Source: Macrostomum hystrix
Taxonomy: Eukaryota; Animalia; Platyhelminthes
DNA: 64,000 nt
Reading direction: 5' to 3'
Assembly: GCA_950097015.1 (NCBI GenBank)
Contig: CATNEN010000007.1
Span: 9,672,001 to 9,736,000 of the forward strand
Shown here: piece by piece, positions 465-60,203 of the stretch
Numbering within the stretch: position 1 is the first letter of the stretch
Layout: every line of letters starts with the position of its first letter
Notes under the pieces: model-generated
The model's database searches: none
What the model was told of the DNA's origin: nothing
What the model saw: the letters and a program-made list of their open reading frames with translations, nothing else
Made by a program: the position numbers and the translations under genes

Positions 465-682
465 GACTCTCGATTCAACACTTGGCCCTTTCCTGATTGG
501 CCTGAGGAGAAATTCCACCAACCAATGGGAGTGGAGCGATGGCAGCGAGCCCGAGGCGGGCACTTTCTACATGGGCCGGCCGCCTCCGAACTGCGCAGCC
601 CTGGATGCCAACTTGGCGCTGGTGATCGACGTTGACTGCTCGCAGCAGCTGCAGTTCGTGTGCCAGCTGACCAAGTACTCCG
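465..682 (+). CDS. PKD1-like exon: second half of C-type lectin domain 1
   Basis: tag|G..G|gt exon translates FLIGLRRNSTNQWEWSDGS...NCAALD...DVDCSQQLQFVCQ (CTL WIGL/WxDG/C...C..F.C motifs). The first half is missing, so the gene starts before the window. Confidence 0.85.
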
Positions 683-3600
683 GTAATGCACTGGCTTTCT
701 CACTGACCATTCGTGCTTTGAAGTGCTGTCGCACCAGCACTAATCGCACTTTCGTTTGAGCATTCTTCCTGAATTTATCTTCGTGTTCATGTGCATTTTC
801 TTCCTCCAGGGTACTCAGGCTCGTCAGACAAGCTGATGCTGGTGCAGAGGAAATACTGCGTTCTTGCTGCTTACAGGACAGGCCCATTGATCCCATACCA
901 AAGAGCATTGCGGCTGTTAGATATGGATAATTCCTCAACAAACCAGTTTACAACCACTGACAGCCGCTCGGGAGCCTACATAATGTATTATTCAGCAGGA
1001 TCCTGCAACTCTTTGAGTCCGCTTGGTCAAGCTGTTGTCTACCTGTTCTCATTTAGCAAGTGTAAGTAGGCAGCCTATAGGCCTTGTTCTTTCCTAATTC
1101 AAGCTTTTCTGACACTGACATTGTACCATGAGACAGCAAAGCCAAAGCCTATAGGCCTTGTTCTTTCCTAATTCAACAAGCTTTTCTGACACTGACACAG
1201 TGTACCATGAGACAGCAAAGCCAAAGCCTATAGGCCTTGTTCTTTCCTAATTCAACAAGCTTTTCTGACACTGACAGTGTACCATGAGACAGCAAAGCCA
1301 AAGCCTATAGGCCTTGTTCTTTCCTAATTCAACAAGCTTTTCTGACACTGACACAGTGTACCATGAGACAGCAAAGCCAAAGCCTATAGGCCTTGTTCTT
1401 TCCTAATTCAACAAGCTTTTCTGACACTGACACAGTGTACCATGAGACAGCAAAGCCAAAGCCTATAGGCCTTGTTCTTTCCTAATTCAACAAGCTTTTC
1501 TGACACTGACACAGTGTACCATGAGACAGCAAAGCCAAAGCCTATAGGCCTTGTTCTTTCCTAATTCAACAAGCTTTTCTGACACTGACACAGTGTACCA
1601 TGAGACAGCAAAGCCAAAGCAAATGACGTCTCTTTCACTGCAGCCTGCATGAAGCCGCTGCTGAAAGGCATACCTGGAGAGGTGAGCGTCAACCTGCAGG
1701 CGTCCAGCAGCCACTACAGGCGACATGTGAATTATTCTGCGGCCGGCTCTGTCGGCAGCTATGCGGGTGAGCCAATCTCCTGGGCTGACTCAGGCTGGCT
1801 CCATGAGAAATTAGCACCTGAATTATCGCATTTCAGATCACAACAAGTGCGTAGTGGTCCCTGGCGACTATCAGTACTACGACTACGAAATCGGAATGGC
1901 AGAAAATGGTCGACTTTGCGAAGCACAGAGCGTTTGTGGCGGCTACATTCCAGCAGGGTACCAGCCGAACAGCCAGTGCGCCTCCAGTAGGTCACAGTTT
2001 GCTGACTGCTGGCGATGGGAAACAAATGAATTTGAAACCTCGCTGCTGAGTGATTTTCAAAGCGAAGCAAACAGACTTTATATTACGCTTGATTGCATTT
2101 TACTGCATGGCTGAATTATGTTTGTGCGCAAACCTCATTAGTGTATTAGCGGGTTATAAGTAGCCATCAATCATTAAACGTTTCAGTAAGGGTTGCGGCT
2201 CAATTCGCCTGCTGTACTAGAGAATCGAGCTGGACCACCGTAAAGCGTTGCTTCGACATCAACAGTGCGAACTTCAGATGCGGTGAGTTAACCAAGTCCA
2301 ATTTTGAGTGCGTTCTCTGAAAAAGAAAATAGTGAACGAATCTTAAAACCTTTTAGTGCCGAACTATCTACCATTCAATGACCAGCAGGCGAAGGCATTG
2401 TACTCGGCAAGTTTTCAGAAAGCTTTCTTCTTTAATGACAAGCGGCTGCCAACCACAAGTTACAGTGAAAGCGAAAGTATTGTCACTCTGAGCACGAACT
2501 CAATTTCTTCCGGGATACCAAAGCATTTTTGGAGCCTGCTGGTTGATCTGAAATCCGTCCACTGCCTAGGATTAGCAGTCCTGAATTTTAGTAAGTTTAT
2601 ATATGTGGATTTCGCATAATCATTCCCGATTGAGAGCTGATTTGCAACCACGCATGACATGTGATAGGTGGCAAGCTTAATAACTTCACGGTTCGAGTGG
2701 GCGACATCTGGAACCTGAGCCTCGCTGATCTGGCGTTTCAACCGTGGCCCGTCTGTTACCGCTTTAATCTTCCGGAGGACGCGGCCTCGCCGCTGACTGT
2801 GAAATGCAGCAGCTCCATGTGCGGACGCTACGTGGCATTCCTGCAGGGTGTTGGCGTTGGACGGCTGTCAATCACCGGCCTGCAGATTGTTGCCGAGGAA
2901 GGTGAGTGGGGTTTGGCATGGTCTCTGGAAAATCCTCAGCATGCTGCACTTGGTCTGCACACCGAACATTTGTATTGGATTGGTTGGAGTCTAAACTGAC
3001 GACCCTCGTCTACTTGTCCGCTTTGGTTTCGTGCCAAATCAACAGACTGATCGGTATTTAAGATTGCCTTCGTGATCAACACACACGAGATCGAGATTCG
3101 AGTAGATTAGCATTACTGCAAACTCGACCCCACAATCAGAAAATCAGACAGTGTATTAAAACACGCAATTGTGACCGCTCACACAATTAACTTGATGATT
3201 GAATACAATTGACAGTTCTGAGTCAACATTTGCGCGCCAGCTGGACTCTGTGCTTGGGCTTTTACCCTGTACTCGTATGAGAGGCCCATTTGCCCTCCTG
3301 CCCACCAGGAGACGGAAACTGCTACGTTGACAATGAAACCATTGGTTTCGTCTCAGCTTCTTCAATGAATGAGGAGCTACGCATTGTTTAGCTGCCCACT
3401 GCGACCATTTCAGTGAACCTGGAGGACCGGACTGCGCATCCGATCATTATTCGCCGAGTGCCTCGCGACATCATGCAGCCGGCGAGCCAGACGAAGAACC
3501 TGACGATTCATGTCAGGCTAAGACTGAGTGGTGTGAAACTCTGGTTTACCAGCTTCTATAGTCACCAGGACATCCTCCGAGGGGTAGGTTTTGGGCCCCG

Positions 3601-6600
3601 AGTTTCGATGACGCTGAAAGATGTTTCATGTTGATCGCAGGTATTTCTAAACACTTCTCCAACATCAAAAAACGCCTTTCAAACTTCAGATTCGTTGGGA
3701 AATAGCCATTAAGGGCAATGGATCTCACGCTTTCATTGATGACTGTGCTGTGAGAACAGGCGACTCTGGAAATCTTATAAATCTGGCTGCCTTGATTCTC
3801 GCCTCTGGTACTTGTGTGGCGGCAGACACAGATGATTTCCAGCCACTGGGCCTGTCATGGACTCAAATGGAGGTCAATGTAACTGTACGCGGCATGCTCC
3901 TGGCGACTTTGCGAGTCGGAAATGCAATACACGCGATAGATGTGCAAAACATCGGGTACACCGTAACGGGGGCAGATACAGACAGCGAGAGGCCTCACAT
4001 TTTGTTCAACATGCCGAGTAAGTTGCGGCTTTATGACCGGCTTAAAGGACAAAAACGCGGGTCCTGGTTTGACTTGAAGGAAATTCGTTTAAACTCATTG
4101 CCTGTAGCACAAACCAGATTCATGAAAGTGCTTGAATCGAATTCAAACCTGCGAAATATTCTAAAATGTACAAAACTCTAATTGTAAGACTGCAATAAAC
4201 TCTCTCACAGATGACAGGCAGCTGGGATTCTGGGCTCCAGCTCTGAGCTATTCCACGTGTAACTTCATCGAATACCAACAGGTGAGAAACGTTTTGGGCT
4301 GTTTTAAAGTACAAGAAGCAGACGAACTACTAAAAACTGGCATTTCCTTGTAGGCCACATTTTCCAGCTACGTCACGGTATTCGTGGTCGCATTGCAAGG
4401 CGGATCCGACCGAGTTATCATCAACTCCGCGACGGCTCTCTCAATGCAGCAATATCTGTTCTCACACTCTGTGGACAAGGTGGCATTTTCCAACTATCCA
4501 CTAGTACGGGAAAACTTTATAATCATTTTTATTTAGAAAAGTAGAAAGTTTAATACAAAATGAAGGATAATTTTTCAACCCTGTCACAGGTATTCGATGG
4601 ACCGATGCGTGCCACAGCTGCGAGTTTTGTAGGCCTGGATCCGGAGGTGACCGGACTGGCGTTCCGCTTGTACGCTGCCCACTATGGCAATCCTGATAGA
4701 TGGGAGTCCCGCTGGATGCTTTACGGCTGCAAGTCTGGTGAGAAAACGAAGTCTGGTGAATGATTGCAGTTCTTGATGCTAGATTTGTACTTGCTTCGGC
4801 AGTACATACGAGTACACTAAGATTGCAACGATACAGAGATTTGCATTTGCCTGCGCAAGACACGCGAATTCGTGAAGCGTTTCATATTTTTTCAATGCAG
4901 GTGAGTGGCAGAGCGGTCTAATGCGCTTGCCTCTCGTACCAAGGTCCCTGAGCTCGATTCCGCAGCGAGGCCACAATCATTTGGGGCGCAGCCCCGGAGA
5001 GAAGGCTTGGGAGGCTTGTCGTGCAATTTACGCTCTTGAGAGCCAACTTCCAAGGCACAGTGAATTGTAAACTGCATGACGATGAGAAAGTCAGGGCTGA
5101 TGTACACACCTGTGTGAGCGTGTCTGTGTACAGTATCTGTGTGCGTTGCGTGCTCAGGAGTCAGCGACATGGGCAGAATCGCCTCCTGGCTGGCTGCGGG
5201 TCTAGTGTCACCAAATGATGTGCCATTGGCCGCAATAAATTTGTACACAATTTTTTTCTGGTAAGAGCCTTGGCACCTCATTCCCCTGTTGCAGATCGAA
5301 CGTTGCACAGACCACCTCCCGTTCCGATACACACTCGCCAGCTTGTGGTTGGCAGCTCGATATTAAACGCTCAGCGTCTTACTGATGGCATGAGAGCCAG
5401 TTTTTACGACACATTCGAGCTCTGCACCAGCACATCGGTAACGCCCTGGGTGGCCATCGACTTCGTATCTCTCAGACACGTCGAAATTGTTCTGGTCTGG
5501 GGCACGTTCATCCCTAGTGAGTGCCAGCGCAAGAGATCATGTGGACATGCAATCGAATCAAGGCTTCTCATTATAACCATCCCCTTTGCAGCAAACGTGG
5601 GTCAGGAATCGAATGTATACACGGCGATTTTTGCATCCAATCAGTCACGATACGATTCCACTACGTCAACTCAGCTAGCTCAAAACTGGTACTCAGTTTT
5701 GCCGAATCCCTGGCGAGCGACTGTTGATCTCGTACGGTTCACCGTATTCCAATTTTATACAGAGCATATGAATGCATTGTGATTCACTGCCTGATTGAAT
5801 TTCAGGTAGCCCGGCTGGTTGGCATTGCCAGCATCAAAGGGGACGCAATTTCGAAGACAATAAAGTTTGCTGAGCTTGAAGTCTACGGAAATCCTCTCGG
5901 TAAGTTTGGCTTTTGCTGTAAATCACTTGTCTGCATTCAGTAAGGTGACAGAACACACAAGCTGGCGTATGCGTACAGCGAGAATACAGTACGGGGCACA
6001 CCTCTTTCTAATCCCTGGCCTAAGTCCCAGGACTCCCAGCTAGTCGGCGTCAGGACACACGGACTGTCCGCCCAGTTATGGCACGAAAAAACCAAGACAA
6101 GGCCGCGACTTAATTTAGGCGTCTCGGGTTCGGCTGGCGTGCCTCGCTGGCAATATACTTGTAGTGTAGTGTAGCTGACAGGTGGCAAGGGTCTTCGACT
6201 CTTCGCATTAAGATAATATCTTTAACTGGGTGATCCACATTGTCGGAGAGAGAGAAAGCGAGGACGATGAACCGCGCATTTTATAATTCCATGGCTCTCC
6301 CCGGGCTGGGGGGGTGCCCAAAGCCACACGCACGGCCCCCGCCCCGCGCCCCACCACCCAAACTCAGAGCCGGCGCCAATCACAGCCGGCGCAGCAGGGG
6401 AGAGAGCCCGGGGTGAGAGCCAGACAGGGCGGTCCAAATGAGCCGACAGCCAACCAGCGCGCGATAAACACGCGATTAGGCAAATAACTAATGACACTTA
6501 AGAGGCAGGTAAACAGGCCGACGCAAACAATAACACGATGATGAGACACGATGAGACACGGGGGTTTGCATTCAACAGGCAATACTATAAGCACAGTTCG

Positions 6601-9600
6601 AGCGTCAATAAGTGAATGCTTGCATGTCCTGATGAACACATACCTTAGTGTGAGTCTATGCTTGATTAGAGAAGGCAAATCCCTCAGATCTCAGTATTTA
6701 AAGGTCGTCATTGCTTCCACATTCCTCTTTCCGCATTCACCCAAATGGCAGAAATCACGGACACCGAGTTCCCTCGCGCATTCGAATCGCATGTTGAGCT
6801 CGGCACTCGATTTCCCCCGACGGGAGTTCAGCCCACGGGAATCGATAGCAGCGGCGACTACTCAGGCAACATGTACTCGCTGCCGCTGCACTTTCCCGGT
6901 GATGAGAGCTTTCACCACGCTATGCTGCTCACGCCGAGCAGCTCTCTGCTGCTATTCCTGCCACAGGTGTTTATTCTGTCGGGCCTGCTGATGCGCGGCG
7001 GCTACCAGCACTACGGCAGCGGCCTCTACGGGGTAGTCAGGACGTTCAACATTCTCTATACAGCCAGCAGTGACAGCAGTCAGCTGCAGTACATCACGAA
7101 CCCAATCAGCGGAGCAGTGGTGTGTGGCTGATGCGTATTTGCTGTTCAAAAGTAAATCTTCAGACGAAGGAGCTCATTGAACTGTCTCGAGAGACAGAAG
7201 TAAAAAATCGTTAAGACAGCCAGGCCAGATCTCCCGCTCAGTTAAGTTGCTTTACTGAAATACTCAGAAGGATACAACCTTCTCTTTTTAAGGCTTTACT
7301 TAACGGGCCAAGCAACGAGATCGAGATCAGTAGGATCAGCTTCAACGGATCATTCTCAGTGCAGCTACTCAAGCTGGAGATCAAATCTCATTGTCAGAGG
7401 CCTCAAGTCAAGCTGGACCTACTGGGCTACCCTCGCGATCCAGGTAAGTTCACGTAGTTCAAATATTTCTACTCATTGAATGCGAGCGGCATTTTTAAGA
7501 GGCATTGGAAATTTCAGCTGCAATTGAAATTCCTGACGCAAGCATTACTGAAACTGCTCCTGGAGTTCTCAAAGTAGACTTCCAAGGCCACTACCATCTG
7601 AATGGAATTCTCATAAATAGAAGCAGCGTTGAGTACGCTAGTTTTCTGATCTCCTTCACTGAAATAGAAGGAGAGCCGCCCCGGAGAGTTGAGGTTCATG
7701 ACAGTGATTGGCTGGTAAGCATCGATGTTTTTGTAGAGCCATGCTGAGCTTCCGTTTCACTCATAAATTCAAAGTCTCTGTCGCATCACAGTTCGAGAGC
7801 AGCCGGTCACAGCATCGCCTGGAGCTGCCGATCCTGATGTCTCCGATCTCTCTCACCGTACAGCTCGTCAATGGGTCCCTGAGCTCAAAAGACTTCACTT
7901 TCATGGGAAAGCGGCTCACACCCTGCCCGCCAGGCTTCGTGCCGCATGGAGACTTGTGCTATCACCTGTCACCTGTAAAGGCTCTCTGGGACTCGGCCAG
8001 GGCAATGTGCCAGTCGTACTACTGGGCAGGAAAGAGAGGTGATCTTCTCATGGTGAAAGATCCCACAATGCTGAGCCTACTCTCCAGATGGTGAGTACTA
8101 TCGGGTATTGGGCAAGCATTGGATTTGAAAAATAGAAGCAATTTTGCAATGCTTTCTCAGGAATGATTTCGAGCTGCACATTGGAATGACAAGAAGCGGG
8201 TCAGGCTGGCTCTGGCTGGACGGGACATCCGTCGCTGAGACTCTGTGGAAGTTCCATCAGCCTTCCGAGATCCATGGCTTGTGGAGCATGAGGCAAGCGG
8301 CTCTAGTAGCTGCTGCGACAGGCGAGAAGCAGATGTTCGCCTGTCAGCTGCCCCAGGTTCCAGGTAAGACGAGAGAGTTCCCAGTTCACTATCGAAACAC
8401 GCCTAATGATAACGGCAATGATGCTCGCGATAAATGCTGCTTTTATAGACGCGGACCAGAGGCTGCTGGTGGGTCACGCAGCCTTTGCTGACTACAGGAG
8501 CAGCATTGGGGGCCAGACTGAGCTGGCTTGTGTGGCCCAGCCTGACCCCGGCGCAAGTCGAACTCTGCAGCTGCTCTACACTCGGCTGCACCTAATGGAC
8601 GAAAGGCTGGGCAAGTTCTCCGCAGGGCATCTGCAGACGTCGGAGAGCAGCATATTTGCTTCCAGCGTCACGGCAGGCCTGCTCGACGGGCTACCGGATG
8701 CCGACTACCACGTGGTGGACATCGAAGCCGCAGACAAAGGTGAAAAAGTTTCAACGTCAGTGCTCACTTTAAAACACGGTTATAATAAAGCTGTAAATAT
8801 GTTTTAAAGTGCAAAAAGTATAAAAGGAGTTGAGGCCTAGTGTTTAGAGTTTTTGACTCATGACTTGAAGGTCGGGGGTTCGATTCCCGACTCCACTGGG
8901 AAAATTTTTATCTTTTAGCAAGGCACTTAACTCTGCATTGCTTCAGTTCACCCAGCTATTAACTGGGTACCAGCTTCAGCTGGGGTAATTGAGGGTGTCT
9001 GGCGCCCCCCTCCCCAGTCCATGGACTGAACAGCCGTACACAGCCTTCAGATGCGCCACGCAATAACCGCGGCTGTGCTGTCGGCTGCATATCTGGCCCA
9101 ATCGGGGCAGGTGTAATCAATTGTTTTTTTAATTAAAAATTGCACAGCGACTCTTCTATTTCAGAATCTCTTAACGGTCTTCTGTCGAACCAGAGCCTCG
9201 CGCAAGTGACGGGCCACCCATTCTCGGCCTCTTACTTTGACGCATCGGGGGGCATTATCGGTCGCAAAATCCGTATGAGACGTAAGTATTTTGCACCTAT
9301 TTTACAAAGTTAATTGTGCTTGGAAGCCTAAGAACCTATGTAGCCTACGTATACACATGAGTGCATTTTAAGTCTACTTTAAAACTTTAAAACACCCCAG
9401 AAAACTGTTTGCTCGTCCTCGGAGATCCAGATAACTTCGTGTATCCGTTGAATGTGACCGCAAGGGGAAAAGCATGTCTGCAGACTCCGTGGAATGCGAC
9501 ACTGACATCGAAGAGGGACCTCAGAAACTACTGCATCACCAGTAAGCATGATTCTATAAGAACATTTTTTACAGAGAGGATTTCCGCGTTTACTCACCTG

Positions 9601-18600: not shown

Positions 18601-21600
18601 CGCACTTGCTAATCGCTCAGACTCTCTGCGTTGGTTCAACTCATCTGGTGGGCAGGTCTTCGTGCGGATCATTCAGAAATCCTATAAACCACCGCGTAAG
18701 TTTAAGCACGTCGAGTTTCAAAAATTTTACGATAATTTTCTATCCAAAGTTAGAAAGTTAAAAAGTTAGAAAGAATCGATCAAATTTTAGCAAGAGCAAT
18801 CGATGAGCAATGCTATTCTGACGTAGCGTGCTCTCTGACTATGAATACGGCCTGCTTGTCACCTGGACCTGTGCTCAACACGAGTTGTCTCTGCCGCTCT
18901 AGTTTTGTTCGTTTGGGCAATCAGTGCGTTCCCGGTAAGGCCAAGTTCAAATCTCTAATAGTTTCGATCGGCACTGATCGCATTCCTAAAATTTTCACAG
19001 GAAACTCATAACGCACAATATCGTGAGAAACTATTTTTCCTATTTCAGTCGTGGACTTAATGGCAATCAACGTATCCATTGTTCAGCCTCTGAGGCCCGT
19101 CATCAGAGCCCAGCCGACTAACTTGACGCTTCGCATGAGCATCGGCTTATCGTCTAAAGCTTTCAGCGGCTCTGTTCGAACGGACTATTCATTCGCCGCT
19201 TTTCTCACTGGAAATGGGGTTAATATGTCGATCAAGCCGTTGCTCACTCCAACAGAAAGCACAAACTCAAGCCAAGAAGTTGGAGAGCTGCGTCAGTTCG
19301 AGATCGTGGTTCCCGTGACTGTTCCAGCTGGAGGAGCCTGCAGGCTGTTCACTCAGGTGTGCGTGGCAGCTGCAGTCGGACCTTCAGCTGGATTCGTTGA
19401 GGAAGACCAGACAAACAATGCTGTGTGCAATGCGATCACTTGCATGTGCCAGCCTGAGCTCAGCGTCTCAGCATCCTTGTCAATAGAAGGGCTGCGAACT
19501 CGCTCAGTTTCGTCTCCCATTTTACTGAACGTTACCCTGCTGTTAAATGCAAACAGTTTTGCACCTGTGGCCTCCGTGCCAGCACCCGATGCAAACTTTG
19601 AGCTCTCGGTACTCTACTCTCCGGTTGATTGCAGTCATAACTCAACCTGCTTGGCTGAGGCAAGAAGTTTTCGATCCAACAAAGAGCAGGTTAGAGATGC
19701 CATACCTCCTGGCGAGCAACTGCATGTGACTGTGTCCAACTCACAGACACTGGGCCTTTTAGACTGCGAGTACTATAGTTTTCTGTGCGTGCATGCCACC
19801 ACAGGTAGCAACGCCAGCCTAACCTTGGCTTTCCCGGACTTGGCAATTGCATGCTCACCCCTTCCGAGAAACTGTACTCCAGGCGCAGACATTGAGCTTG
19901 AGTCCATCGACTTTGCGGTTCTCAACTCGACATGGATTCGAAGATATCCAGCAACTCTGGCGGTTTCTTGTGCTCTGCGCCTCAGAGGTGGCATCCCTGT
20001 AGAAGCCGTGCCTTCTCCGAGAATCAATTTCCAACCTCGAGTGTTTCTGCGTGGATCTGAAAGCTTCTATCCTCAAGTGAGCGACTGTGCCCAAGATGAG
20101 CAGCGCATGGAGCTGGCCTTCAATGTCACTCTAAACTGCCGACTCACATTCAATGTTAGCTTGGAGATGTGTGAGAACCTCACTGATCTGTGCACGGAAG
20201 TCAACGCCAGTCCTAACGCATCTTACACAGAGATGGACATGACCAATAACCTGCGATGTTTGCCATTACAGGGCAATCTATCGTGCTCAGAAGTACCTAT
20301 ACTTAACATTAGCTCTAGTTTATCTAATTCGGTACTAAGACTTGGAGAGAGTTCTACGCTGTCCATCTCCTGGGAGCAGGGCTCCGCAGTAGATGTCGCT
20401 GTGAACGTTAGCAATGGTGCTCACATGACTTGGAACTGGCGGACAGCCGGTCACGTGACCAGTTTCAAGCAACATTCAGTCAGCTGGAACATCAGCTTCG
20501 GAGACGACGTCGGACTTTTCTCACTTAATATCCTAGTAACAAATGGATTTTCATCATGGACAAGAGAATTGAGGGTGGAGGTCATTCCTTACCTACCCGA
20601 CTTCTTGGATTTCAATTTCGATTGCGTAGCGGCACCAACTCCGCTGAACGGCAGCCTCAGGCTTTCAATGCTCCGGGGAGGTCCTAACTCCCACCTAACA
20701 GCCGCATGCAGTGCTCAGCTTCTACAGGAGAGCGAGCTGTATAATTTCACTGCGGATCTTCGACCTGGAAGCACTCAGCAGGAAATCCTGATCTTTGACT
20801 TGACAAGCCAGCCCTTTACTTTAGCGAACATATCATGTTGGAACTCACTGAGCACTGCAAGCAGGACTTTTTACGTAATTTTGCAACAGAACATCAGCGG
20901 TCTCCAAGCAAATGCAAGTCACGTGGTGGCAACCAACCAAACTCTTTGGCTCACCCTCACCATTGAGCAGGGGAGCCATGTGGACTACCACATTGATTTC
21001 GGCAACGGGACTTCAGCGAAGTTTCCAGATGCACAGCTGCTTGCATGGCAGATGCCTGATACTTTGGCACTGGCTTTCAATCCGCCCGGCAGATACGACC
21101 TCACTGTCGTGGCCACAAACTTTCATACGCATTCAAAAGTTCAATCTTTCAGTGTAATAGTCCAAAATCCAGTCGCCCATCTTGGTATTAAGGTTCCTGA
21201 GTACATTGAGCTTAGTTCTCATGGATATTTGGTGATCAGTCAGGTGGACCCGAGGCCAACGAACGCTACTTGTTCTGTCCGCTTTGGAAATCGGTCTGAG
21301 AATCTCTGCTTCTCTGGTTTTGCTAACACGTCCGTCTCCTGTTCGAGAGCTCTGCTCTACGGCCCAGAACCAGTCAAAGTAACTTGTTGGAATCTCGTTT
21401 CATCTGCAGAGGTCTTGAATGAGAGCTCTCAGTGCCAAGAAGCAATTTCTGGCTTGTCATGGTCAGGCCCTATGACAGTTCTGACAGGAGAGATACTGAA
21501 CTTCAAGGTGAATCTCGATTCTGGAACAAGCGTCCAGTTCAATGTGAACAGCAGTGACGGGCAGTGGATGTCTTTAGAGTACAACAAAACATCCGCCCTT

Positions 21601-24600
21601 GCCTTCAACATCAGCGGAAACTACAGTGTGAAGCTGCTCGGCTGGAATGGTGTCAGCAGTCAGTCTGTTCTGGTCGGACCGATAGTGGTGCAGGATGCCG
21701 TCAGGAGCTTGCAGATCGTCCACAATGACAGTGTGCTCTACACTCCAGCGCAGGTGCACTTCACTCTCCGTTGCATGGTGAGCCTTGTCAACCTTCACTG
21801 CGTCTTCAACTGGACAGGACTAGGCACTCGCTATTTGTACGTGCCCGAGATTGGTCCCGACGCGGACTTCTTCATGGTCAATCAGTTTGAAAGAGATGCC
21901 TTGGGGCTCCGCAACTTCACCGTAAACTGCTCAAACCTTGTCTCGTGGCAGCTCCTTCCAATGACAATTGAAATCATTCTTGATGCGGTAAGAATTTCAG
22001 ATTTCCGAACGAACGGCTCCGTGTTGGTTTATAATGCGACAACATTCTTTCTGGAAATCGGGAGATACGGAACCAACGGCTGCTTTATAGTTGACTATGG
22101 TGACTCAAGCTATGAATGCTTTGGAATTGGCGAAGCTTGCAGGCAGTATGCCAGCAACAGGAGCATCCAGTTCAACGAGCTGCCTTACACAAACCTGTCC
22201 ATCTCGTTCACTCATTCGTATCCGGACGTTGGAATTTTCCTAGCAAATGTCTTCGCCTTTAATCACGTCAGCAACGATACGGTCGGAACGCGGGCGGTGG
22301 TGCTGGAACGAATTTGCGGGCCTCCCCACCTGAATTTTTCCTATAAAGGAGAAGTCATATCTCAGGGAGACTCGAAATACCCAATTCTGCTGATGCGCTC
22401 TGAGCAGCTTAGCGTGGAGTCTCAGGTGGAGCTGAACTGCACCAAGACCAGCATCACTGTTCAGCGGTGGCGCATCGAGGACAAGAACGGGCCTCTGTCT
22501 CTGGCCCTAGGAAACTCGTTCACCCTCAGCCTGCCCAATCGAACCCTGTGGTACGGCATGTACAATGTGCTGCTCAACGTGTCCATGTTCGATGTCAACC
22601 CACCTGTGTCCGCTGAATTCAGCTTCTTCCTCAACGTGAGCAAGACTCCACTCACCCTGGAGTTCGCTTCCACCAATGCGTCAGTAGACTACAACGTGAC
22701 TGAGGCTGTCTCTGTCAGCGCTCGCGACTGGGATGTGGAGAAGGACAACCTGACTGGGATGCTGTTCAGATGGCACTGCAGACAGGAGGCAGAAACCAGC
22801 GGCTTTCCCCTTGGACCCACCGAACGAGTCAGCATCCCGAACAGCCAGAGCGCCGCTGTGTTCACGGGATGCTTCGGAAATGGCGCTGGAGTCTTTCTTG
22901 AAGGCCCCAAGCTGAACGAGACGGCCATTAACTCCTGGCACTTCCTGCCGAACAGGTCTTACGTGATTCGGGTGGCTGTCTTCAAGGACACTCGACTCGC
23001 CACTGCAGACCTGCGAGTATTTGTCAGACCACAGAAGGCGGCGCAGATTAGATTGAGGTAAAGATGCGAGCTAGATACGAAAAATAAGAATTACACATTT
23101 TTATTTGCTTTGCATATCTACGAACTATTTTATTCTTCAGATGTGTTCTAAATTGCGGTTACAAAGTGACACCGAATTCGCCTTGGTCCATCAACTCCCA
23201 GTGCTTAGAGAATTGTGGCAATAAGTTTAGCAGTGTCTCATATAAATGGACAATGCACCCTTTTCTCAGTGCTGCTCCAGATGACTTATCGGCCGTGGCT
23301 CACTTCAGTAAGTACGAAAATCAACATTTTACTCTCATGGAATTACTGACACAGTTTCTAACCAATCATTTGTTTTAGGCCCATCAGGTGACACAATCAC
23401 AAGAAGGCCAGACACTCTCCAGATAGGAATCGAGTACCTGGTCAGCGTTTCTGTATCCGGCTTCGCCCAAGAAGGACCCAGCTCGCTGTCAGACCTGCGC
23501 GTCATAAACAGGCCTGCGAGCGGAGGCAGCTGCGACGTTGAGCCAAAACTCGGCACGGCCATGCTCACAAACTTCCGGATTTCCTGCTGGGACTGGCTGG
23601 AGTTCAACGTCACGGAGTCTCGGCTCATTTACGAATATCGAATCCGACCTAAGGGCGAGCAGAGAAGTTTGCTCTTGTTCTACGGGCCTGCTGCCGTCAC
23701 ACCCTGGGTCATCCTGCCCGTCGGGGCCTATCTTCACGGCTACGAGTCGGAGGTAATTCTCAACATTATCGACAGACTGAATGACAGGGCCACCGTTGTC
23801 GTTAACATCACGGTAAGTCGCATATACGAGATACGAGATACTCGTAGATACTTTGGCTCATTTGGGACTCCTTCACTGCTTTTCTTTATCATAAGCACCT
23901 CTGAAAACTAACCAATGGCAGGTGAACCCGCCACCAATCCCAGCCAATACCCTAATCTCAAATATAACGGCGGTGTTGGATGGCACTGACGACGAGCTGA
24001 CTCAGCACCTGCTGAGCGGCAACCAGCAGGGAGCCTTCACATGCGTGATGTCGCTCTTGTCGGTCATGAATGCAAAAAATGAGGATGCCGAGGGCGCCAA
24101 TTCAACGGCTGCAAAGACTGCAGCTTTCCAGCGAGCAATGTCTGGGGTAGGAGGCAGTGAAAAGTATATTTGTAGCCGCCAGTTAAACTAGAAATTATAA
24201 TATCTTGCTCACTTTTCAGCTTCGAGAAAAGTTAATCGACATTGTGGCAAACTTTTCCGTCAGTTCTCGAGAGGACTTGGAGCAGGTGAACGATGCTCTC
24301 AGAAACTCTGTTCCGGCAGAAAGAGCCAACCAAGTGAACCTGGAGTCACTGGTATGTGCTTTTCACGATTTCGGCCTTTGGTTTTGTAGTTGCTGATTTT
24401 GGTTTTGCGAAGAAACTATTGCATAACTCATCACTTTCAGCTAATGTGCACCTCCAAACTGCATGAGATTTCGGGCAGTTACAGCCAAAATGCCGAGACG
24501 CTGAGTGGGGACCTGCCGCAACTCATCGGAAAAGGTTAAACAAATCATAAGTTCTGCATTTTCCGTGCTTTGTATTCGATGGTTTAGGTCACATAGATGA

Positions 24601-27600
24601 TGGTATGCTTAACAATTTCAGACATTGTCCTGACTGGCTCGAACATTTGGCAAGCCATGGATGCTATCCAGAAGAAGGACAGCACTGCTCACAAGAACTG
24701 CTCAAATGCGTCTGCGTCTAGTTGCACAGAGAATATGAATGCTCACATTGTGATTAATTCTGTACTCAAATCGATTAGCTTCGTCACGGACATCCTATTG
24801 AACAGCACGGGAACATACTCGATATCGGACCAATTCATGTCTGCGCAAGGCGTCGCTGTGTTGAACGAAAGTGCCGCAGAATTGTCGTTTAAATCCGATT
24901 TCGGTGACGTCACAGTCCATCAGTCGAACAGCACCTGCCGATACGCGAAGTCTCTATTCTCAAGCAGGGATCCGTACATCTGGCAGAACAGCTCGGTCGA
25001 ATCCGCTGTTCTCATGTTTGAGGCTCGAAATTGCAAGGCCGAAAGTTTGCAGTTCTCACTGGCCACTGGGAAGAATCGCGGTGCTCTCGTGAATGTAACG
25101 CCAACTGACCGCTGGCTGACAGTCTATCACGAAGTCAATGTAACAAAGGCCATGATGCAGGTTACAGTTGAGCCCGTCAAAGCCAGCGAGCCACTCGTCC
25201 TTACCGTGAAGGTAGGCTCGCTGCCAAAACCTACCGACTTTTTCGTGCCCACTGAAAGAGGTTCGTATAGCCTGCCCCAGACCGAAGGCCCCTACTTCAT
25301 CGGAGTGCGCCGCGAGGGCTGTTATCGCGATCCGACCGGAGCAGTGGCGTCGGAGTGCCCTGATCCCAGACTAGTTTACCAGCTTAGCCTAACCGAGTTC
25401 TCGTGTCGCTGGTGGAATTCCAGCCTCGAGCTTTGGCAATCTCTGCCCGCAGAGTTGTGCAGTCTTAACAGCAACCTTACCGCTCCTGACAGGCCATTCT
25501 TCACCAGTCGACTACTAGGCAGTCTCGGAGTTGGTGTGAACATTGTGCCGAACACGATAGATTTTGGCCACCTGTTTGAGAATTGGCAAGGCAAGCTTGC
25601 CGACGCGCGTGCTGTGCTGGCCACTTTAGTTGTGCTTTGGGTCACCTTCATTCCCATTGCTTTGTGGCTACGGCGCCTCGATGGCGAGGACAACGTGCGG
25701 GTGAGTTTGAGTTTGACTTGGATTTCGAGCAATGGAGCTAAGATAATAGATTTTCTAGCTCTAATATGCACACTTCCCACTTCAGTTCTCATACCTGCGA
25801 CTAAAAGACGACCGGTTTAAACCGTTTGCTTATCTCCTGGACGTCTTCACGGATGGAGGAACCGGCGGTGGCACCGCAGGCTTGCCGCTGATAAGTCTTT
25901 GCGGAGAGTGGGGCTGGGAGATCTGCCGTCAATTGTGCGATGGGCTTCGAGAGGTTAGAAAACGTCTTTAATAAGTGCTATCAAAGAGCTACATTATTCC
26001 TTTCCGATGCGATTCCTAACAATTTTTTAGAACTTTCGCAGTGGAGACGTCAATCACTTCCTACTGACAGCTGGTCAGCATTTGGGAGATCTTCTAAGCA
26101 TTCGACTGGCGTTGTATGGCGACAATCAAACTCAGCCGTGGAAACCCCGCAGGATTGTCGTCACGGATCTGCACTTTGGATCCAGGTGGGAATTGAAAGA
26201 CTGATTTGTTTTTTGGAGCCACTTAAATAAGCCGGGGATAATTTCGCCGAATTTCACCTGCCGCACTGCAGATACGTTTTCATTCCGGCCGACCTAGTCG
26301 AGCCCAACAGAGACTCGGTGGGCGTCAGCCTGGCCACAGCTGAGCAGCTTGAGCTGCAGCCAGGCTTCATCAGGACCAACCTGATGCGCAAGTTTCAAGA
26401 CGATCACCTGTGGATGTCAGTCGTAGAGCGCAAGACGAATACGAATTTCAACCGGCTGCAACGGTTCAGCGCGTGCTTCAGCCTGCTGTTCCTGACCATG
26501 CTGGCGAACGCCATGTTCTACGGCTTGGGAACGGCTGCACCCACAGCTAGCGACTCCATCATGGTCGGTCCGGTCAGCTTCTCGGCCAATGCGGTTATTA
26601 TATCGGTCCTTGGCGCCCTTATTGTTTTTCCACCTTCCATTTTGATCACATTCTTGTTCATGAAGTCGAAGCTAAGGTTGCCACAACCCTCAAGCCTGAC
26701 TTACTGGTGGAAACTGTACAGAGCTGAAAAGGACGACGTGGTAAAAAATGCAGACCCTCCAGATCCCGTAAGTTGCACATTTCACGGAAAAAATTCACAT
26801 CTAATTGATTTCAGCCTTTCGCATACAAAACTGAACATTTTAAGCTGGACATTGTGATCCGGTCGAGAAACCTGTCCGACAACCCAGCGTCAACACCAAT
26901 CGTTGTTAAGCAAATTGAGCAGCGCGAGTTTCCTCTGCCTTTCTGGTGCCAGTGGATCGCCTGGGTGCTCATCGTACTCACAATGCTGGGCTCGACAATG
27001 TTCATCGTGTTCTACTCGATGCAGTGGGGCAAAGACAAGTCGCAGGACTGGCTGCTGTCGTTTCTGCTCTCATTTGGCCAGACAGCTTTGCTCATTCAGC
27101 CTCTGAAGGTACGCTGCCAATTGAGGTACCTTACTAATGTAATTCTGGGAGCGAGCAAGTTCTATTCGAAACGGTAAAATTGCAGGTGTTCGTCGTTGCG
27201 ATTGTACTTATTATAATCTTTAGAAGGGACCACGATGTCCCTCAGGAGTCTCTCATGCGACTTCGATATTATAACGATGGTTATAATAGAGGTAAGAGTT
27301 CTTTTTCACATCCAAGTACACACTAGTTTATACTAATGAGATATCTGCTCCGATTCCTAGCGTGCTTCGCGAAATAGTAAGGCACAGCGGATAGACACAC
27401 GTTGCAGCTGCAACAAGCAAGCAATGAAAGGCTATTTCGCTCTTTGAACAGTTTGTTCTGATAGTTAGTTGGAAGGTCTCATCAATAGTCATTTATTCAA
27501 ACTTTTATTTGCTACGTTAAAACACAGACTAATTACATAGGGCATTCCGTTTCAGAGGCTGTTGCGTATCTGGACGAGCTGAATGAAGTGCTGAAGAAGG

Positions 27601-29341
27601 ATCCGATACGCAAAGCTGCCAGGTCGAGCTGCACGGAGGCTGGCGTGACGCTCCTTCTGCTTGCGCTTCTCTACTGCATCGCGTACAGCAGTACGGACTC
27701 TGCCACGTTTCTCCTGCACGAGAATATCCGCAATAGATTGCGTTTCGCGAGCCTAGACAATGGGATCGGCAAAGCGGATGAGCTATTCTCCAGGTGGGAA
27801 TCCAGCCTGCTGCCCGCTGTCTTCCCGGATAGCTCTCGCTTCGTTTCCGACCAGGCTGGCTTCCGTCTCAGCCGTCTGTCCGTTCGGCAGCTTCGGATTG
27901 ACCGCAGCACCCACTCGGGAACCAAGGAGGAGCAGAACTGCTTCAGCCCTAGGTGGACTCACACAGTCGGCTGCAACCTTTCAGCCGATCCGCTGTCCGC
28001 CGCCTTCATGAACCGCCCAGACGGAGTGCCGTACTCCGGTCGCTCTCGAGACTACCGGGGCGGGGGCTTCGCAGTTCTGCTGCCTGACGGACTCCAAGCG
28101 AGCAGCGCCATTCTGGGAAAACTGCAGAGCCTCAACTGGCTGGACGCTTCCACCGCTGTGGTTATTGTCGAACTGGACTTATTCTACCCGAATGTGAACC
28201 TCTTTACATCAGTTGCTATGGCAACCGAGTTCTGGCCGTTTGGGGGTGTGAGCAGCAGTTCCAGCTTGCTCTCGGTGAGCCTCTACCGGTACGTTGGTGC
28301 AGCTGGAGTCCTTAGGCTGTTGTCTGAGATCGCGGCTGCTCTGCTCACCATCGTCATGCTGGGACTCCTAGTTCTCAAAATGCGCAGAGAGAGGGTCAAA
28401 TTCTTGCATGAAATCAGAAACATGCTGGACAGCTGTGCAGTGGCGGCCATGCTGATGGCCTGCATTCTGTACGCCACAAGAGCGGCTGCCACTGGACCCA
28501 CGCTCGAGGCTGCAGTGAATGGCGGCTGGCCAGGACTCCGTCGGCTGCTGCTGCACAACCAGCAGTTCCTCTGCTGCATCGGCGTCGCCACAGCCTGCCT
28601 GCAGCTCTCGCTGCTCCACCTCACTCGCTTCAGCGCCAGCCTTGGCCACCTGCTCACCACTCTGCGCATGGCAGTGGCTCCGCTCGCCTCCTTTTCTCTT
28701 GTGTTCATCATCGTGTTCCTGGCCTTCAGCCTGCTCCACACCCTGCTCCTGGGACCGGCCAGTCTGGCGTTCTGCACCCTTCCAGGCACAATGTCCACCC
28801 TGTTCTCCGCCATGCTCGGCAAGTTCGACTTCGAGGCCATGAACCAGAGTAGCTCGTTGGCAAAGCTGGTGTTCTGCCTGTACCTGGTGTTCATCATTTT
28901 CCTCATGGCCAACTTATTTGCCGGAGTCATTCTGCAGAGCTTCAACAAGTCGAGAGAGATTCACTCGCAGGACAGCACGAGCTTCTTTGTGGTGCAGTAC
29001 ATTGTGGACAGGATTCGGGAGACTTTCCGATTCGGGAGCACCAGTGTGTCCTACCGAGAGGGCGAAGGTATTTCGCAGGGCATTTGACGAACTTGCTGAT
29101 TTTCCCATTCTGGACACAATCTACTCTGTGACGTATTCCCCGATCAATCAATCCATCAGCAGATTTCGCCAGCCTGGCGTACCGGCTGCACTGCGGCCTC
29201 TCAGCCATCGCTGGTGCGGCCGACAAGCACAGCGAGGGGGCCCGCGACGATGACACCCGGCTGATTCGGCTCCGGTTTGCCGGGCAGGATGGCGTCGCAG
29301 GTTTGAAATTGGGCCCCGAGCAGGTCGGCTCTAAAATATGA
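465..29341 (+). CDS. Giant polycystin-1-like (PKD1L/REJ family) 11-TM receptor, multi-exon, 5' end upstream of window
   Basis: Chain of GT-AG exons with compatible phases at the junctions I checked. Domain order: CTL/kringle/FTP/F5-8C array, fibrinogen-C, EB, PKD repeats (YHIDFGNG, IVDYGDS), REJ (LFRWHC, VNRPASGGSCDVEP-like), GAIN/GPS (CRWWN..W), TM1, PLAT, 'DDHLWMSV..R....FNRLQRFSACFSLLFLTMLANAMFYG', TOP domain and channel-like TMs; stop TGA at 29339-29341. Confidence 0.93.
1073..1620. repeat. ~79-bp tandem repeat, ~7 copies, filling a PKD1-like intron
   Basis: Unit gcctataggccttgttctttcctaattcaacaagcttttctgacactgacacagtgtaccatgagacagcaaagccaaa, between donor 1062 and acceptor 1643. Confidence 0.95.
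2357..7444 (+). CDS. PKD1-like exons: FTP(fucolectin)-like and F5/8 type C (discoidin)-like domains, block A
   Basis: SLLVDLKS...LNNFTVRVG...C...C..GRYVAF; WVAIDF...FAELEVYG; F5/8C-type endings RWMLYGC and KLDLLGY. Confidence 0.7.
4900..5235 (+). mobile_element. tRNA-derived SINE, family A copy 1 (intronic)
   Basis: A-box TGGCAGAGCGG and B-box-like GCTCGATTCC; colinear with 56640-57006. Confidence 0.88.
5928..6577 (-). mobile_element. Probable TE remnant (solo-LTR-like) in a PKD1-like intron
   Basis: Unusually long GC-rich intron insert with TG..CA ends and TGCATTCA near both ends; on the minus strand the order is CCAAT, GC box, TATAAAA. No clear TSD. Confidence 0.35.
7920..8363 (+). CDS. 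PKD1-like exons: C-type lectin domain 2
   Basis: CPPGFVPHGDLCYHLS...WDSARAMCQ...HIGM...WLWLDGT...W...QPS...FACQ. Confidence 0.88.
8826..9120 (+). mobile_element. tRNA-derived CORE-type SINE (intronic)
   Basis: tRNA-like head 8826-8895 (GGAGTTG/CGACTCC acceptor stem, GGTTCGATTCCC B-box), then GCAAGGCACTTAACTCTGCATTGCTTCAGTTCACCCAGCTATTAACTGGGTACC, which resembles the CORE domain. Confidence 0.75.
9401..9687 (+). CDS. PKD1-like exons 9401-9541 and 9616-9687: kringle-like domain
   Basis: ENC...YPLNVTARGKACLQTPW...LRNYCIT / NPSCFVDNSTTEECIRHSC matches the kringle Cys spacing and the NYC and PxC motifs. Confidence 0.65.
9766..13461 (+). CDS. PKD1-like exons: FTP-like and F5/8C-like domains, block B
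   Basis: SLLVDLKSPH...C..PPARFVAIVR; FAVDG...CFQS...YWLVDLQ...LSVCEFEVYG; FLDIWLD...VTGVVWQG...LRVELLGY; IRLLPINW..LKWEVYG. Confidence 0.75.
13535..14052 (+). CDS. PKD1-like exons: C-type lectin domain 3
   Basis: CPVNTFRHGNLCY...AQRLCQ...GRLARM...GCVV...WRSVACD...PFVCEI. Confidence 0.85.
16358..16918 (+). CDS. PKD1-like exons: C-type lectin domain 4
   Basis: CPVNFYYFEGRC...AEKLC...WTHWSIGQPNSSDECAA...WLPVSCD...VACQ. Confidence 0.85.
18135..18695 (+). CDS. PKD1-like exon: fibrinogen C-terminal (FReD) domain
   Basis: WIVVYK...NRSMAEYFYGF...WLGL...FRLLI...LNGTRFSTFD...CA...SGWWFKDC..TKLTG matches the FReD consensus (W.V.QR, F.R.W..Y..GFG, WLGL, FST.D, GGWW...C). Confidence 0.9.
18791..18934 (+). 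CDS. PKD1-like exon: EB/EGF-like six-cysteine module
   Basis: QCYSDVACSLTMNTACLSPG...SCLCRSSFVRLGNQCVP; phase-1 exon, not in the ORF track. Confidence 0.7.
19049..23057 (+). CDS. PKD1-like 4.0-kb exon: three Cys-capped Ig-like repeats, PKD repeats, start of REJ
   Basis: 1336-aa ORF bounded by tttcag| and |gtaaag; PKD motifs (GSHVDYHIDFGNG...Y.L.V.A.N; IVDYGDS...HSY...F.ANV.AFNHVS); many NxS/T sequons. Confidence 0.9.
24622..25700 (+). CDS. PKD1-like exon: GAIN/GPS region and TM1
   Basis: FSCRWWNSSLELWQS...C...IVPNTIDF...VLATLVVLWVTFIPIALWLRRLD. Confidence 0.88.
25786..27108 (+). CDS. PKD1-like exons: PLAT/LH2 domain and TM2-TM5
   Basis: YLLDVFTDG..GGGT...ISLCG / FRSGDVNHFLL...LGDLLSIRL...W....VVTDL; DDHLWMSV; YSMQWGKDKSQDWLLSF. 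Confidence 0.88.
27556..29067 (+). CDS. PKD1-like exon: TOP/polycystin domain and channel-like TM6-TM11
   Basis: RQLRI, YRGGGF, LNWLDASTAVVIVELDLFYPNVNLF, LGKFDFEAM, FLMANLFAGVILQSF. Confidence 0.93.
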
Positions 29342-58788: not shown

Positions 58789-58790
58789 CT

Positions 58791-60203
58791 GGATCACTGT
58801 CTAACAGGATGGATCACTGTTTTACAAAATGGGTCACTGTCTAACAGGATGGGTCACTGTCTAACAGGATGGGTCACTGTCTAACAGGATGGATCACTGT
58901 CTAACAGGATGGATTACTGTTTTACAAAATGGGTCACTGTCTAACAGGATGGGTCACTGTTTTACAAAATGGGTCACTGTCTAACAGGATGGGTCACTGT
59001 CTAACAGGATGGGTCACTGTCTAACAGGATGGATCACTGTCTAACAGGATGGATTACTGTTTTACAAAATGGGTCACTGTCTAACAGGATGGGTCACTGT
59101 CTAACAGGATGGGTCACTGTCTAACAGGATGGATCACTGTCTAAGAGGATGGGTCACTGTCTAACAGGATGGGTCACTGTCTAACAGGATGGATCACTGT
59201 CTAACAGGATGGATTACTGTTTTACAAAATGGGTCACTGTCTAACAGGATGGGTCACTGTCTAACAGGATGGGTCACTGTCTAACAGGATGGATCACTGT
59301 CTAAGAGGATGGGTCACTGTCTAACAGGATGGGTCACTGTCTAACAGGATGGATCACTGTCTAACAGGATGGATTACTGTTTTACAAAATGGGTCACTGT
59401 CTAACAGAATGGATCACTGTCTAACAGGATGGGTCACTGTCTAACAGAATGGATCACTGTCTAACAGGATGGGTCACTGTCTAACAGGATGGATCACTGT
59501 CTAACAGAATGGATCACTGTCTAACAGAATGGATCACTGTCTAACAGAATGGATCACTGTCTAACAGGATGGATCACTGTCTAACAGGATGGATCACTGT
59601 CTAACAGAATGGATCACTGTTTTACAAAATGGGTCACTGTCTAACAGGATGGATCACTGTCTAACAGGATGGATCACTGTCTAACAGGATGGGTCACTGT
59701 CTAACAGGATGGGTCACTGTCTAACAGAATGGATCACTGTCTAACAGGATGGGTCACTGTCTAACAGGATGGATCACTGTCTAACAGGATGGATCACTGT
59801 CTAACAGGATGGATCACTGTTTTACAACATGGGTCACTGTCTAACAGGATGGGTCACTGTCTAACAGGATGGGTCACTGTCTAACAGTATGGGTCACTGT
59901 CTAACAGGATGGGTCACTGTCTAACAGGATGGGTCACTGTCTAACAGGATGGGTCACTGTCTAACAGGATGGGTCACTGTCTAACAGGATGGGTCACTGT
60001 CTAACAGGATGGATCACTGTCTAACAGGATGGATCACTGTTTTACAAAATGGGTCACTGTCTAACAGGATGGGTCACTGTCTAACAGGATGGGTCACTGT
60101 CTAACAGGATGGGTCACTGTCTAACAGGAGGGGTCACTGTCTAACGGGATGGGTCACTGTCTAACAGGATGGATCACTGTCTAACAGGATGGATCACTGT
60201 CTA
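58791..60203. repeat. 20-bp satellite ggatcactgtctaacaggat, ~70 copies
   Basis: Direct tandem repetition with a 160-bp higher-order pattern. Confidence 0.97.

Follow-up and report, generated by a model that had tools for sequence, protein, structure and literature searches.

Polycystin-1 (PC1) proteins play a key part in kidney disease and in left-right patterning, fertilisation and the sensing of flow; to our knowledge, the ligands of their huge ectodomains are still largely unknown. One or more C-type lectin-like domains (CTLDs) are found in PKD1, PKD1L2 and PKD1L3, a single one in human PKD1, where a giant exon encodes the PKD repeats. Sea-urchin REJ proteins carry CTL/CUB/SUEL domains; suREJ1-3 belong to the PKD1 family, have a CTLD ahead of the REJ module and provide a precedent for glycan recognition. 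Here we describe a locus of the flatworm Macrostomum hystrix in a stretch of 64,000 nucleotides on contig 7 (CATNEN010000007.1; C7:9672001-9736000, plus strand), hereafter the window, within which all positions are counted, negative ones lying upstream of it. The locus probably encodes one protein of the PKD1 (polycystin-1/REJ) family, predicted to be 6,732 amino acids long and spread over 66 exons, with a mosaic ectodomain and a putative role as a PKD2-coupled receptor-channel. Like human PKD1, PKD1L1-3 and PKDREJ, the window gene combines PKD repeats, a REJ module, a first transmembrane segment (TM1), a weakly matched PLAT domain, a total of about 11 TM segments, a TOP domain and a channel-like group of last six TM segments.

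Among flatworms, the planarian pkd1L-1, pkd1L-2 and pkd1L-3 are shorter than human PC1 and lack its extra N-terminal modules (bioRxiv 10.1101/2024.07.17.603829). Planarian pkd1-like genes are expressed in ciliated sensory neurons and in the copulatory apparatus, and RNA interference against them produces mechanosensory phenotypes (bioRxiv 10.1101/2024.07.17.603829). In the annelid Platynereis, PKD1-1 and PKD2-1 mediate the hydrodynamic startle response (PMC6294549). These genes belong to the same spiralian PKD1 family as the window gene, are active in ciliated sensory neurons and serve rheo- or mechanosensation with PKD2 partners; by analogy, they provide the most likely functional frame for it. 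The words 'lectin' and 'fibrinogen' are absent from the text of both papers (bioRxiv 10.1101/2024.07.17.603829 and PMC6294549).

The preliminary description of the locus knew of no polycystin with a fibrinogen domain. This still holds for the literature, where a full-text search retrieved no paper on a polycystin with a fibrinogen-related domain (FReD) or an F-type lectin domain, nor on such a family in Macrostomum or Dimorphilus, but not for predicted proteomes. The condition set beforehand as refuting, that this architecture is already widespread in databases, applies in part. Among long database proteins, the closest to the window gene come from the annelid Dimorphilus gyrociliatus: four predicted proteins (DgyrCDS14438, 6354, 14890 and 14777; CAD5126282, CAD5126713 and relatives), which at 5,543-6,071 amino acids are of comparable size. 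Their Pfam domain set is alike (Lectin_C, F5_F8_type_C, F5_F8_type_C_2, Fibrinogen_C, PKD, REJ, PLAT and Polycystin_dom, with PKD_channel in three of the four), and they are colinear with the window gene from the FReD (18011) through an EB-like exon, PKD, REJ and TM regions to position 29057. However, they are only 23-47% identical to it in the aligned parts, their N-terminal module order could not be aligned by BLAST, and they possess an FTP (F-type lectin) domain between the FReD and the EB module as well as PAN/apple modules (PAN_1 in three of the four), neither of which was detected in the window gene. A homologous-protein search with the Dimorphilus FReD/FTP region found only Dimorphilus, so the family is established so far in annelid and flatworm. 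In Macrostomum lignano, the UniProt models P0153, P0007 and P0152 join a FReD to PKD, REJ and TM regions, and model P0057 runs from the last part of the FReD into the beginning of the giant exon.

Compared with human PKD1, the window gene has four CTLDs rather than one and additional discoidin, FTP-like and FReD modules, and its product would be about 1.5 times as long as PC1; on the exon pieces scanned with Pfam, LRR, WSC and LDL-A domains were not detected, and the HL|T cleavage motif is absent. The suREJ proteins are much smaller and without FReD or discoidin modules; their sperm expression and their ligand, in contrast, are known.

The exon model was anchored on tblastx blocks shared with a paralogue on contig 39 (C39, about 8.328-8.366 Mb, minus strand), between which frame-keeping GT..AG introns were placed, a few boundaries being set by eye. 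The genome searched is a 220-Mb assembly of 42 contigs, and both the searches and the reading-frame check were run exon by exon on genomic pieces. The two paralogues share 93 colinear conserved blocks (34-85% amino acid identity) between window positions -1958 and 29027, all confined to exon-sized pieces from the second exon to the last. The resulting model comprises 66 coding exons on the plus strand, with GT..AG at all introns, consistent phases, a median intron length of 85 nucleotides and no in-frame stop; it spans about 31.7 kb (-2595 to 29087) and has a predicted coding length of 20,199 nucleotides, that is 6,732 amino acids and a stop. The single chain of co-oriented exons recognised earlier was thus recovered, and the three junctions that had been singled out for verification (18695/18791, 18934/19049 and 23057/23141) correspond to GTAAG...YAG introns of 95, 114 and 83 nucleotides with matching phases.

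The extent of the gene, however, had to be revised at both ends. Position 465, formerly taken as the start, lies midway through CTLD1 as the acceptor site of coding exon 6, and the gene starts at window position -2595 (C7:9669406). The first coding exon encodes M-S-T-G-L-W-T-A-L-C-L-I-H-A-M-..-S-A-Q-S-I-(G), and that of the C39 paralogue is laid out alike, with a hydrophobic leader, the ending ...K-A-Q-S-I-(G) and a GTGAGT donor. At the other end, the gene most likely terminates at the stop codon 29085-29087 rather than at 29341: the last exon has this stop of its own, an extra exon is unneeded and not conserved in the C39 paralogue, and in the three nearest paralogues the reading frame either closes no more than a few codons away from that stop or continues within the same exon. 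The predicted boundaries 13256/13332, 16918/16996 and 18050/18135 are the best choice among alternatives. The intron at 18051-18134 (84 nucleotides) is open and in frame by chance. If it were retained, a hydrophobic insert of 28 residues would stand directly before the FReD; the equivalent interval of the paralogue contains stops.

We next consider the polycystin core, described earlier as PKD-REJ-GAIN-PLAT-11TM. PKD repeats, REJ, about 11 TM segments and the channel domain were all found; the PLAT match is weak and a canonical GAIN/GPS motif is missing. The giant exon lies in a frame of 1,344 codons (19027-23058), shows PKD matches in two stretches and has 204 database relatives. A homologous-protein search with the same exon retrieved none at E 1e-10, which says little, the query words having come from its poorly conserved first 500 residues and the length of the hits being restricted. 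The two REJ matches, one in the giant exon and one downstream of it, together cover model positions 2-414 of 452. Before TM1, Pfam GPS gave no match on 24597-25817; the GPS position reads ...C..WW...W......C...FF|TSRLLGSLG (more fully, ...FSCRWWNSSLELWQSLPAELCSLNS...RPFF|TSRLLGSLG) and lacks the CxC and HL|T of the CxCxHL|T motif. It is equally degenerate in Dimorphilus (...KF|TSNLFGSLG), and many PKD1-like proteins are also without a canonical GPS site; the degenerate motif therefore does not exclude membership of the PKD1 family. The PLAT-like exons directly follow TM1, as expected for this family, and hydropathy reveals a total of 10 clear TM segments and one weak one, which fits an 11-TM layout. 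The last exon is the most readily recognised part: Pfam on 27489-29084 finds Polycystin_dom (3.5e-22), PKD_channel (1.5e-20) and Ion_trans (6e-12), and PDB matches include PKD2L1 (1e-29), PKD2 (3e-23) and PKD1L3 (2e-22).

Two further sequences, MEE4247216.1 (P0002) and MEE4247217.1 (P0023), belong to the nearest database matches of the giant exon and align with successive, non-overlapping parts of it at 29-36% identity. They are neighbours on a 4.9-kb contig binned as a metagenome-assembled genome of a Kangiellaceae bacterium, which may be a misbinned animal contig.

The ectodomain ahead of this core is a mosaic (Table 1). Pfam was run on about 45 single-exon pieces, and most of the N-terminal ones gave no match because the domains are split by introns. 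We therefore relied on local hidden Markov model (HMM) searches seeded with Dimorphilus domains against a database of 1,456 pieces with filters off; unless stated otherwise, E-values are those obtained before a piece entered the model. The four CTLDs reported earlier are all retrieved in this way: the annelid-CTLD HMM finds exactly four N-halves and four C-halves, each CTLD being encoded by two exons, and the same eight halves in the C39 paralogue. A Dimorphilus CTLD query also matches the CTLD2 region in tblastn (2e-6).

The fibrinogen domain of the earlier account is confirmed. The Fibrinogen_C match covers model positions 41-208 of 221, and PDB matches include MFAP4, angiopoietin-1, ficolin-1 and tenascin (E 2e-8 to 4e-7) among 36 PDB FReDs at E up to 1e-3. 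The small exon that links the FReD to the PKD region is 59% identical to its counterpart in the C39 paralogue and colinear with the Dimorphilus proteins.

Discoidin modules, also proposed before, are supported both by local HMMs and by a predicted fold. About eight or nine can be counted, about five of them at E 1e-3 or better, although Pfam F5_F8_type_C is not significant on single exons. The F5/8C HMM matches 14586-14894 (1.1e-4) and, before inclusion, 12487-12801 (3.9e-4); the exon-43 HMM matches 12818-12991 (7e-4) and the C-terminal strands of the module encoded by exons 49-52 (2.7e-3); and the same exon-43 HMM at its second iteration matches 11338-11562 (2.2e-7), where the module ends in exon 11401-11548. 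An AlphaFold2 model of 14989-15561 built with ten paralogue rows reached a predicted local distance difference test score (pLDDT) of 63, with 75-85 in the core, whereas a model with only two alignment rows was unusable (pLDDT 44). The best Foldseek matches of the former are factor VIII C2, retinoschisin, lactadherin C2, neuropilin b1 and CASPR2 (E about 5e-3), and the top 50 VIA-align matches are all discoidin domains, led by that of CASPR2 (Z 10.7, root-mean-square deviation 2.6 A over 105 residues). The exon-43 HMM, which represents this folded exon, also matches Dimorphilus F5/8C units (3e-5) and, more weakly, -1979..-1605, -1104..-745, 4554-4760, 7215-7454 and the first 50 codons of 17894-18766, the E-values for 4554-4760 and 7215-7454 being 0.005-0.04.

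The remaining modules are less readily assigned. Coding exons 7-21 have no Pfam match on single exons; they contain an FTP-like motif pair (2357-2901) and a repeated module A (3414-4017). An ESM Atlas search with exon 10590-11342 was uninformative (score 0.81). Several fucolectin-like domains had been announced; we found such support for one FTP-like half-domain, which the Dimorphilus-FTP-unit HMM matches at 2.4e-4 before inclusion (11553-11876; 5.8e-3 for the C39 paralogue) and which has no Pfam match on its exons. The kringle-like modules were not supported: Pfam PF00051 finds 32 places in the genome, none of them in the window, and two local kringle HMMs gave E 0.95-1.6 or no match on window pieces. 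Because Pfam-significant kringles lie 10-18 kb upstream of the FReD exon, co-oriented with it, at six more distant paralogous loci, a degenerate kringle in the window gene is possible. Genome-wide Pfam scans with F5_F8_type_C and F5_F8_type_C_2 were filled with matches to hundreds of other genes, and their scored candidates did not include the window. Elsewhere in the genome, tandem clusters contain well over 100 single-exon F5_F8_type_C_2 domains whose CTHT and NR.DCC motifs are intact (for example C1:8455000-8498300 and C3:4452900-4463100).

Table 1. Features of the predicted gene, in window coordinates unless a contig is named, and related loci in the genome.
Feature	Position	Strand	Evidence
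Coding exons 1-5	C7:9669406-9671703, upstream of window	+	Exon model
Coding exon 1, predicted signal peptide	-2595..-2517	+	Start codon and hydrophobic leader, phase-1 GTGAGT donor
CTLD1 N-half	Exon -466..-298 (piece -491..-297)	+	Annelid-CTLD HMM 4.2e-4
CTLD1 C-half, coding exon 6	465-682 (piece 445-756)	+	Annelid-CTLD HMM 1.7e-6; Pfam Lectin_C 3.1e-5
Beta-sandwich-type modules of uncertain family, coding exons 7-21	1644-7714	+	Colinear tblastx blocks with C39 paralogue, 34-85% amino acid identity
CTLD2 N-half	Exon 7792-8090 (piece 7708-8091)	+	Annelid-CTLD HMM 5.1e-7
CTLD2 C-half	Exon 8161-8363 (piece 8129-8488)	+	Annelid-CTLD HMM 6.2e-3
Three small Cys-rich exons, family not established	9431-9984	+	Cys pattern kringle-like by eye
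Repeated module B (internal repeat of 3414-4017), then discoidin-like module	10377-11548	+	Internal repeat; discoidin HMM
FTP (F-type lectin / F5_F8_type_C_2)-like module	11617-12054	+	Dimorphilus-FTP-unit HMM
Discoidin (F5/8C)-like module	12143-12983	+	Two HMMs
CTLD3 N-half	Exon 13535-13742 (piece 13483-13743)	+	Annelid-CTLD HMM 2e-8
CTLD3 C-half	Exon 13811-14052 (piece 13695-14105)	+	Annelid-CTLD HMM 0.1; 1.9e-3 after iteration
Two discoidin (F5/8C) modules, the second (~15145-15553) within one exon	14680-15553	+	HMM and predicted fold
CTLD4 N-half	Exon 16357-16549 (piece 16338-16550)	+	Annelid-CTLD HMM 3.6e-5
CTLD4 C-half	Exon 16689-16918 (piece 16645-17010)	+	Annelid-CTLD HMM 0.08; 2.2e-3 after iteration
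Cys-rich stretch and discoidin-like module ending ...YELFGC, exons 49-52	16996-18050	+	Blocks conserved in C39 paralogue
FReD	18135-18695	+	Pfam Fibrinogen_C 3.9e-11 (piece 17894-18766)
Small Cys-rich (EB/EGF-like) exon, FReD-to-PKD linker	18791-18934	+	Weak Pfam EB 0.0083 (piece 18754-19008)
Giant exon of 4,009 nucleotides, PKD (Ig-like) repeats and first half of REJ	19049-23057	+	Pfam PKD 1.9e-15, REJ 2.1e-12
Rest of REJ module, four exons	23141-24351	+	Pfam REJ 7.4e-16 on 23312-23908
Juxtamembrane (GAIN-position) region, degenerate GPS, then TM1 (25614-25670)	24597-25700	+	Colinear with Dimorphilus and M. lignano proteins
PLAT domain, two exons	25786-26185	+	Weak Pfam PLAT 0.0034 on piece 26031-26201
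TM2-TM5 region	26272-27315	+	Hydropathy 26465-26521, 26591-26647, 26956-27012; weaker in 26953-27173
Last exon: TM6, polycystin (TOP) domain, channel-type TM7-TM11, stop 29085-29087	27556-29087	+	Pfam, PDB
Family loci	C7:9.69 Mb (window gene), C7:11.80, C1:25.72, C12:1.19 Mb		FReD and channel exon
Family loci	C39:8.34, 16.65, 20.47, 8.53 Mb		FReD and channel exon
Family loci, four tandem copies	C29:3.55-3.71 Mb		FReD and channel exon

In the arrangement suggested by these features, the protein would open with a signal peptide and continue as an ectodomain about 5,500 residues long, in which discoidin-, C-type-lectin-, F-type-lectin- and fibrinogen-type modules are combined with PKD repeats and a REJ module. 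It would then cross the membrane at TM1, carry a PLAT domain on the intracellular side and cross the membrane ten more times, the last six TM segments forming a channel-type domain of the polycystin kind. By comparison with other PKD1-family proteins, the product would join a PKD2-type subunit to form a receptor-channel complex at a sensory surface or on gametes, and the huge ectodomain would be its ligand- or force-receiving part. PC1-PC2 and PKD1L3-PKD2L1 assemblies are known, and their structures are among the PDB matches. Coupling to a TRPP2 subunit is plausible because the genome holds a clear PKD2/PKD2L1 homologue (C7:4.23 Mb, E 1e-173); two similar loci were also found. Three long reading frames that were initially regarded as candidates for PKD2 were rejected, as they belong to PKD1-like genes that carry PLAT.

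Several points weigh against reading the locus as a single PKD1-family receptor-channel gene. Its splice junctions, its 5' and 3' ends and its expression are all inferred from genomic sequence, and the database proteins with the same architecture are also products of gene prediction. For several of the N-terminal modules no family match is significant, and the PLAT match scores 18.5 bits against a Pfam cut-off of 23 and covers model positions 44-95 within one exon. Autoproteolysis at the GPS position is doubtful, since CxC and HL|T are absent from it, and may not occur. Last, partner, cell type and ligand are assigned by analogy with PKD1-family proteins.

What the ectodomain might bind is a separate question. 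The preliminary description saw in it a multivalent carbohydrate sensor, which is not supported at the level of residues: canonical sites are gone from the CTLDs and the FTP-like module, and the pocket of the FReD may be altered. At the EPN/QPD position, CTLD1-4 read PPPN, QPS, PPGN and QPN, none of the four has WND, and CTLD2 is also without one conserved Cys. In the FTP-like module, Gln replaces the fucose-binding His and the NR.DCC..R motif is missing, so that the His/Arg/Arg triad (CSHT ... NR.DCC..R) is absent, whereas bona fide FTP domains at other places in this genome have retained the His as well as NR.DCC..R, and the Dimorphilus relatives keep NR.DCC..R. In the FReD, the Cys pair of the P domain is present, but the His that follows the second Cys, at the position of the ficolin-type pocket, is Leu in the alignment to MFAP4. 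Discoidin domains, for their part, are as often lipid- or protein-binding as sugar-binding. With these residues missing, a true multivalent glycan or pattern-recognition receptor, in which CTLDs, FTP, discoidin and FReD modules would bind carbohydrates, for instance of egg coats, mucus, prey or microbes, and gate the channel, appears unlikely, even though module types that often bind glycans are numerous here (four CTLDs, about eight or nine discoidin-type, one FTP-like, one FReD), an expansion to at least 12 paralogues is a pattern known from recognition-receptor families, and sea-urchin REJ proteins bind the fucose sulfate polymer of egg jelly. Because the canonical sugar-binding residues are gone, a carbohydrate sensor is possible but not indicated; the modules are better described as predicted lectin-type folds without canonical binding sites, and the ligand could be a protein, matrix or a non-canonical glycan.

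The window gene is one of a family. Searching the genome with the FReD and the last exon, we found at least 12 loci in which a FReD exon lies about 10 kb upstream of a co-oriented PKD1-type channel exon. At 11 of the 12 loci the discoidin exon is again present, 3-5 kb upstream of the FReD; at 10 there is a homologue of coding exon 2, located 20-38 kb upstream, and the large module-B exon recurs between these two at family loci. Order, orientation and spacing are thus kept in paralogous copies that are old, being only 26-55% identical to the query. Two further loci, on contig 41, hold the orthologues of the M. lignano models; P0007 matches a locus on contig 41 at 61-85% identity and nowhere at 100%. 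Four of the family members stand in tandem, co-oriented and about 50 kb apart (C29:3548000-3738000), each with an exon-2 homologue, a Pfam-significant kringle, a FReD and a channel exon in the same order.

It may be asked whether these 12-14 or more giant FReD/lectin-type genes form a diversified repertoire of recognition receptors wired to an ion channel. We consider this quite improbable; if it were true, every paralogue would respond to its own external ligand (mate, gamete, prey or microbe), and flatworms and annelids would share a channel-coupled equivalent of the recognition families that other invertebrates build from lectins and FReDs.

A very unlikely alternative is that the locus consists of two neighbouring genes, the first coding for a secreted multi-lectin protein that may or may not include the FReD, the second for a separate PKD-REJ-11TM protein. 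Gene predictors often fuse neighbours, the Dimorphilus and M. lignano proteins are predictions, and the chain that joins the two halves in the window is itself read from the genome. However, short phase-matched introns lie across every candidate break, the FReD, EB and giant exons begin without a stop, and the same order, orientation and spacing are found at 10-12 old paralogous loci and in another phylum. Two genes would call for a separate start with a signal peptide in the PKD part, which had been named beforehand as the observation to look for; it was sought at the FReD, EB and giant exons, and none was found: no ATG with a hydrophobic leader opens the giant exon, and no ATG with a signal peptide stands at the start of the FReD or EB exons. 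All together, the phase-consistent junction between FReD and PKD, the order conserved at 12 loci and the Dimorphilus and M. lignano predictions favour one gene, which we consider far likelier than two.

It is highly improbable that the window copy is a paralogue that is not transcribed or is in decay, a young pseudogene of intact appearance. The family is large, stops occur in some paralogue matches and the locus is known from genomic sequence, but 20.2 kb of coding sequence in 66 exons carries no stop, frameshift or broken splice site, and a protein divergence of about 50% from the nearest paralogue with conservation confined to exons points to long-term purifying selection on the window copy.

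The predicted single PKD1-family gene is thus real and intact, with an unusual mosaic ectodomain and an architecture visible in the predicted proteomes of two phyla. Its value is limited for now, as this architecture is already visible in predicted proteomes and its function rests on analogy. Nevertheless, it represents a whole family with swapped recognition modules (FReD, discoidin, F-type-lectin-like and multiple CTLDs) that has been kept in two spiralian phyla, and the dozen copies in a regenerating, transgenesis-ready flatworm genus lend themselves to a natural experiment on the relation between ectodomain composition and the function of polycystins. The locus also provides a complete 66-exon model for a type of gene that automatic pipelines tend to fragment.

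A tandem repeat of 79 bp in 7 copies (97% matches) occupies 1072-1620, within the 961-nucleotide intron between coding exons 6 and 7. Upstream, a similarity between the two paralogues at about -4750..-4590 was considered as an exon and rejected, as it corresponds to a dispersed repeat resembling a short interspersed nuclear element. Copies of this repeat are about 72% identical, are found upstream of both paralogues, with several places in C39:8370001-8400000, and in part resemble a tRNA T-arm by eye. On the 3' side of the gene, about 30 kb (31456-63507) contain few long reading frames and dense minisatellites with periods of 8-169 bp (for example 20 bp in 71 copies at 58790-60203), and GC content and GC skew swing strongly across this interval.

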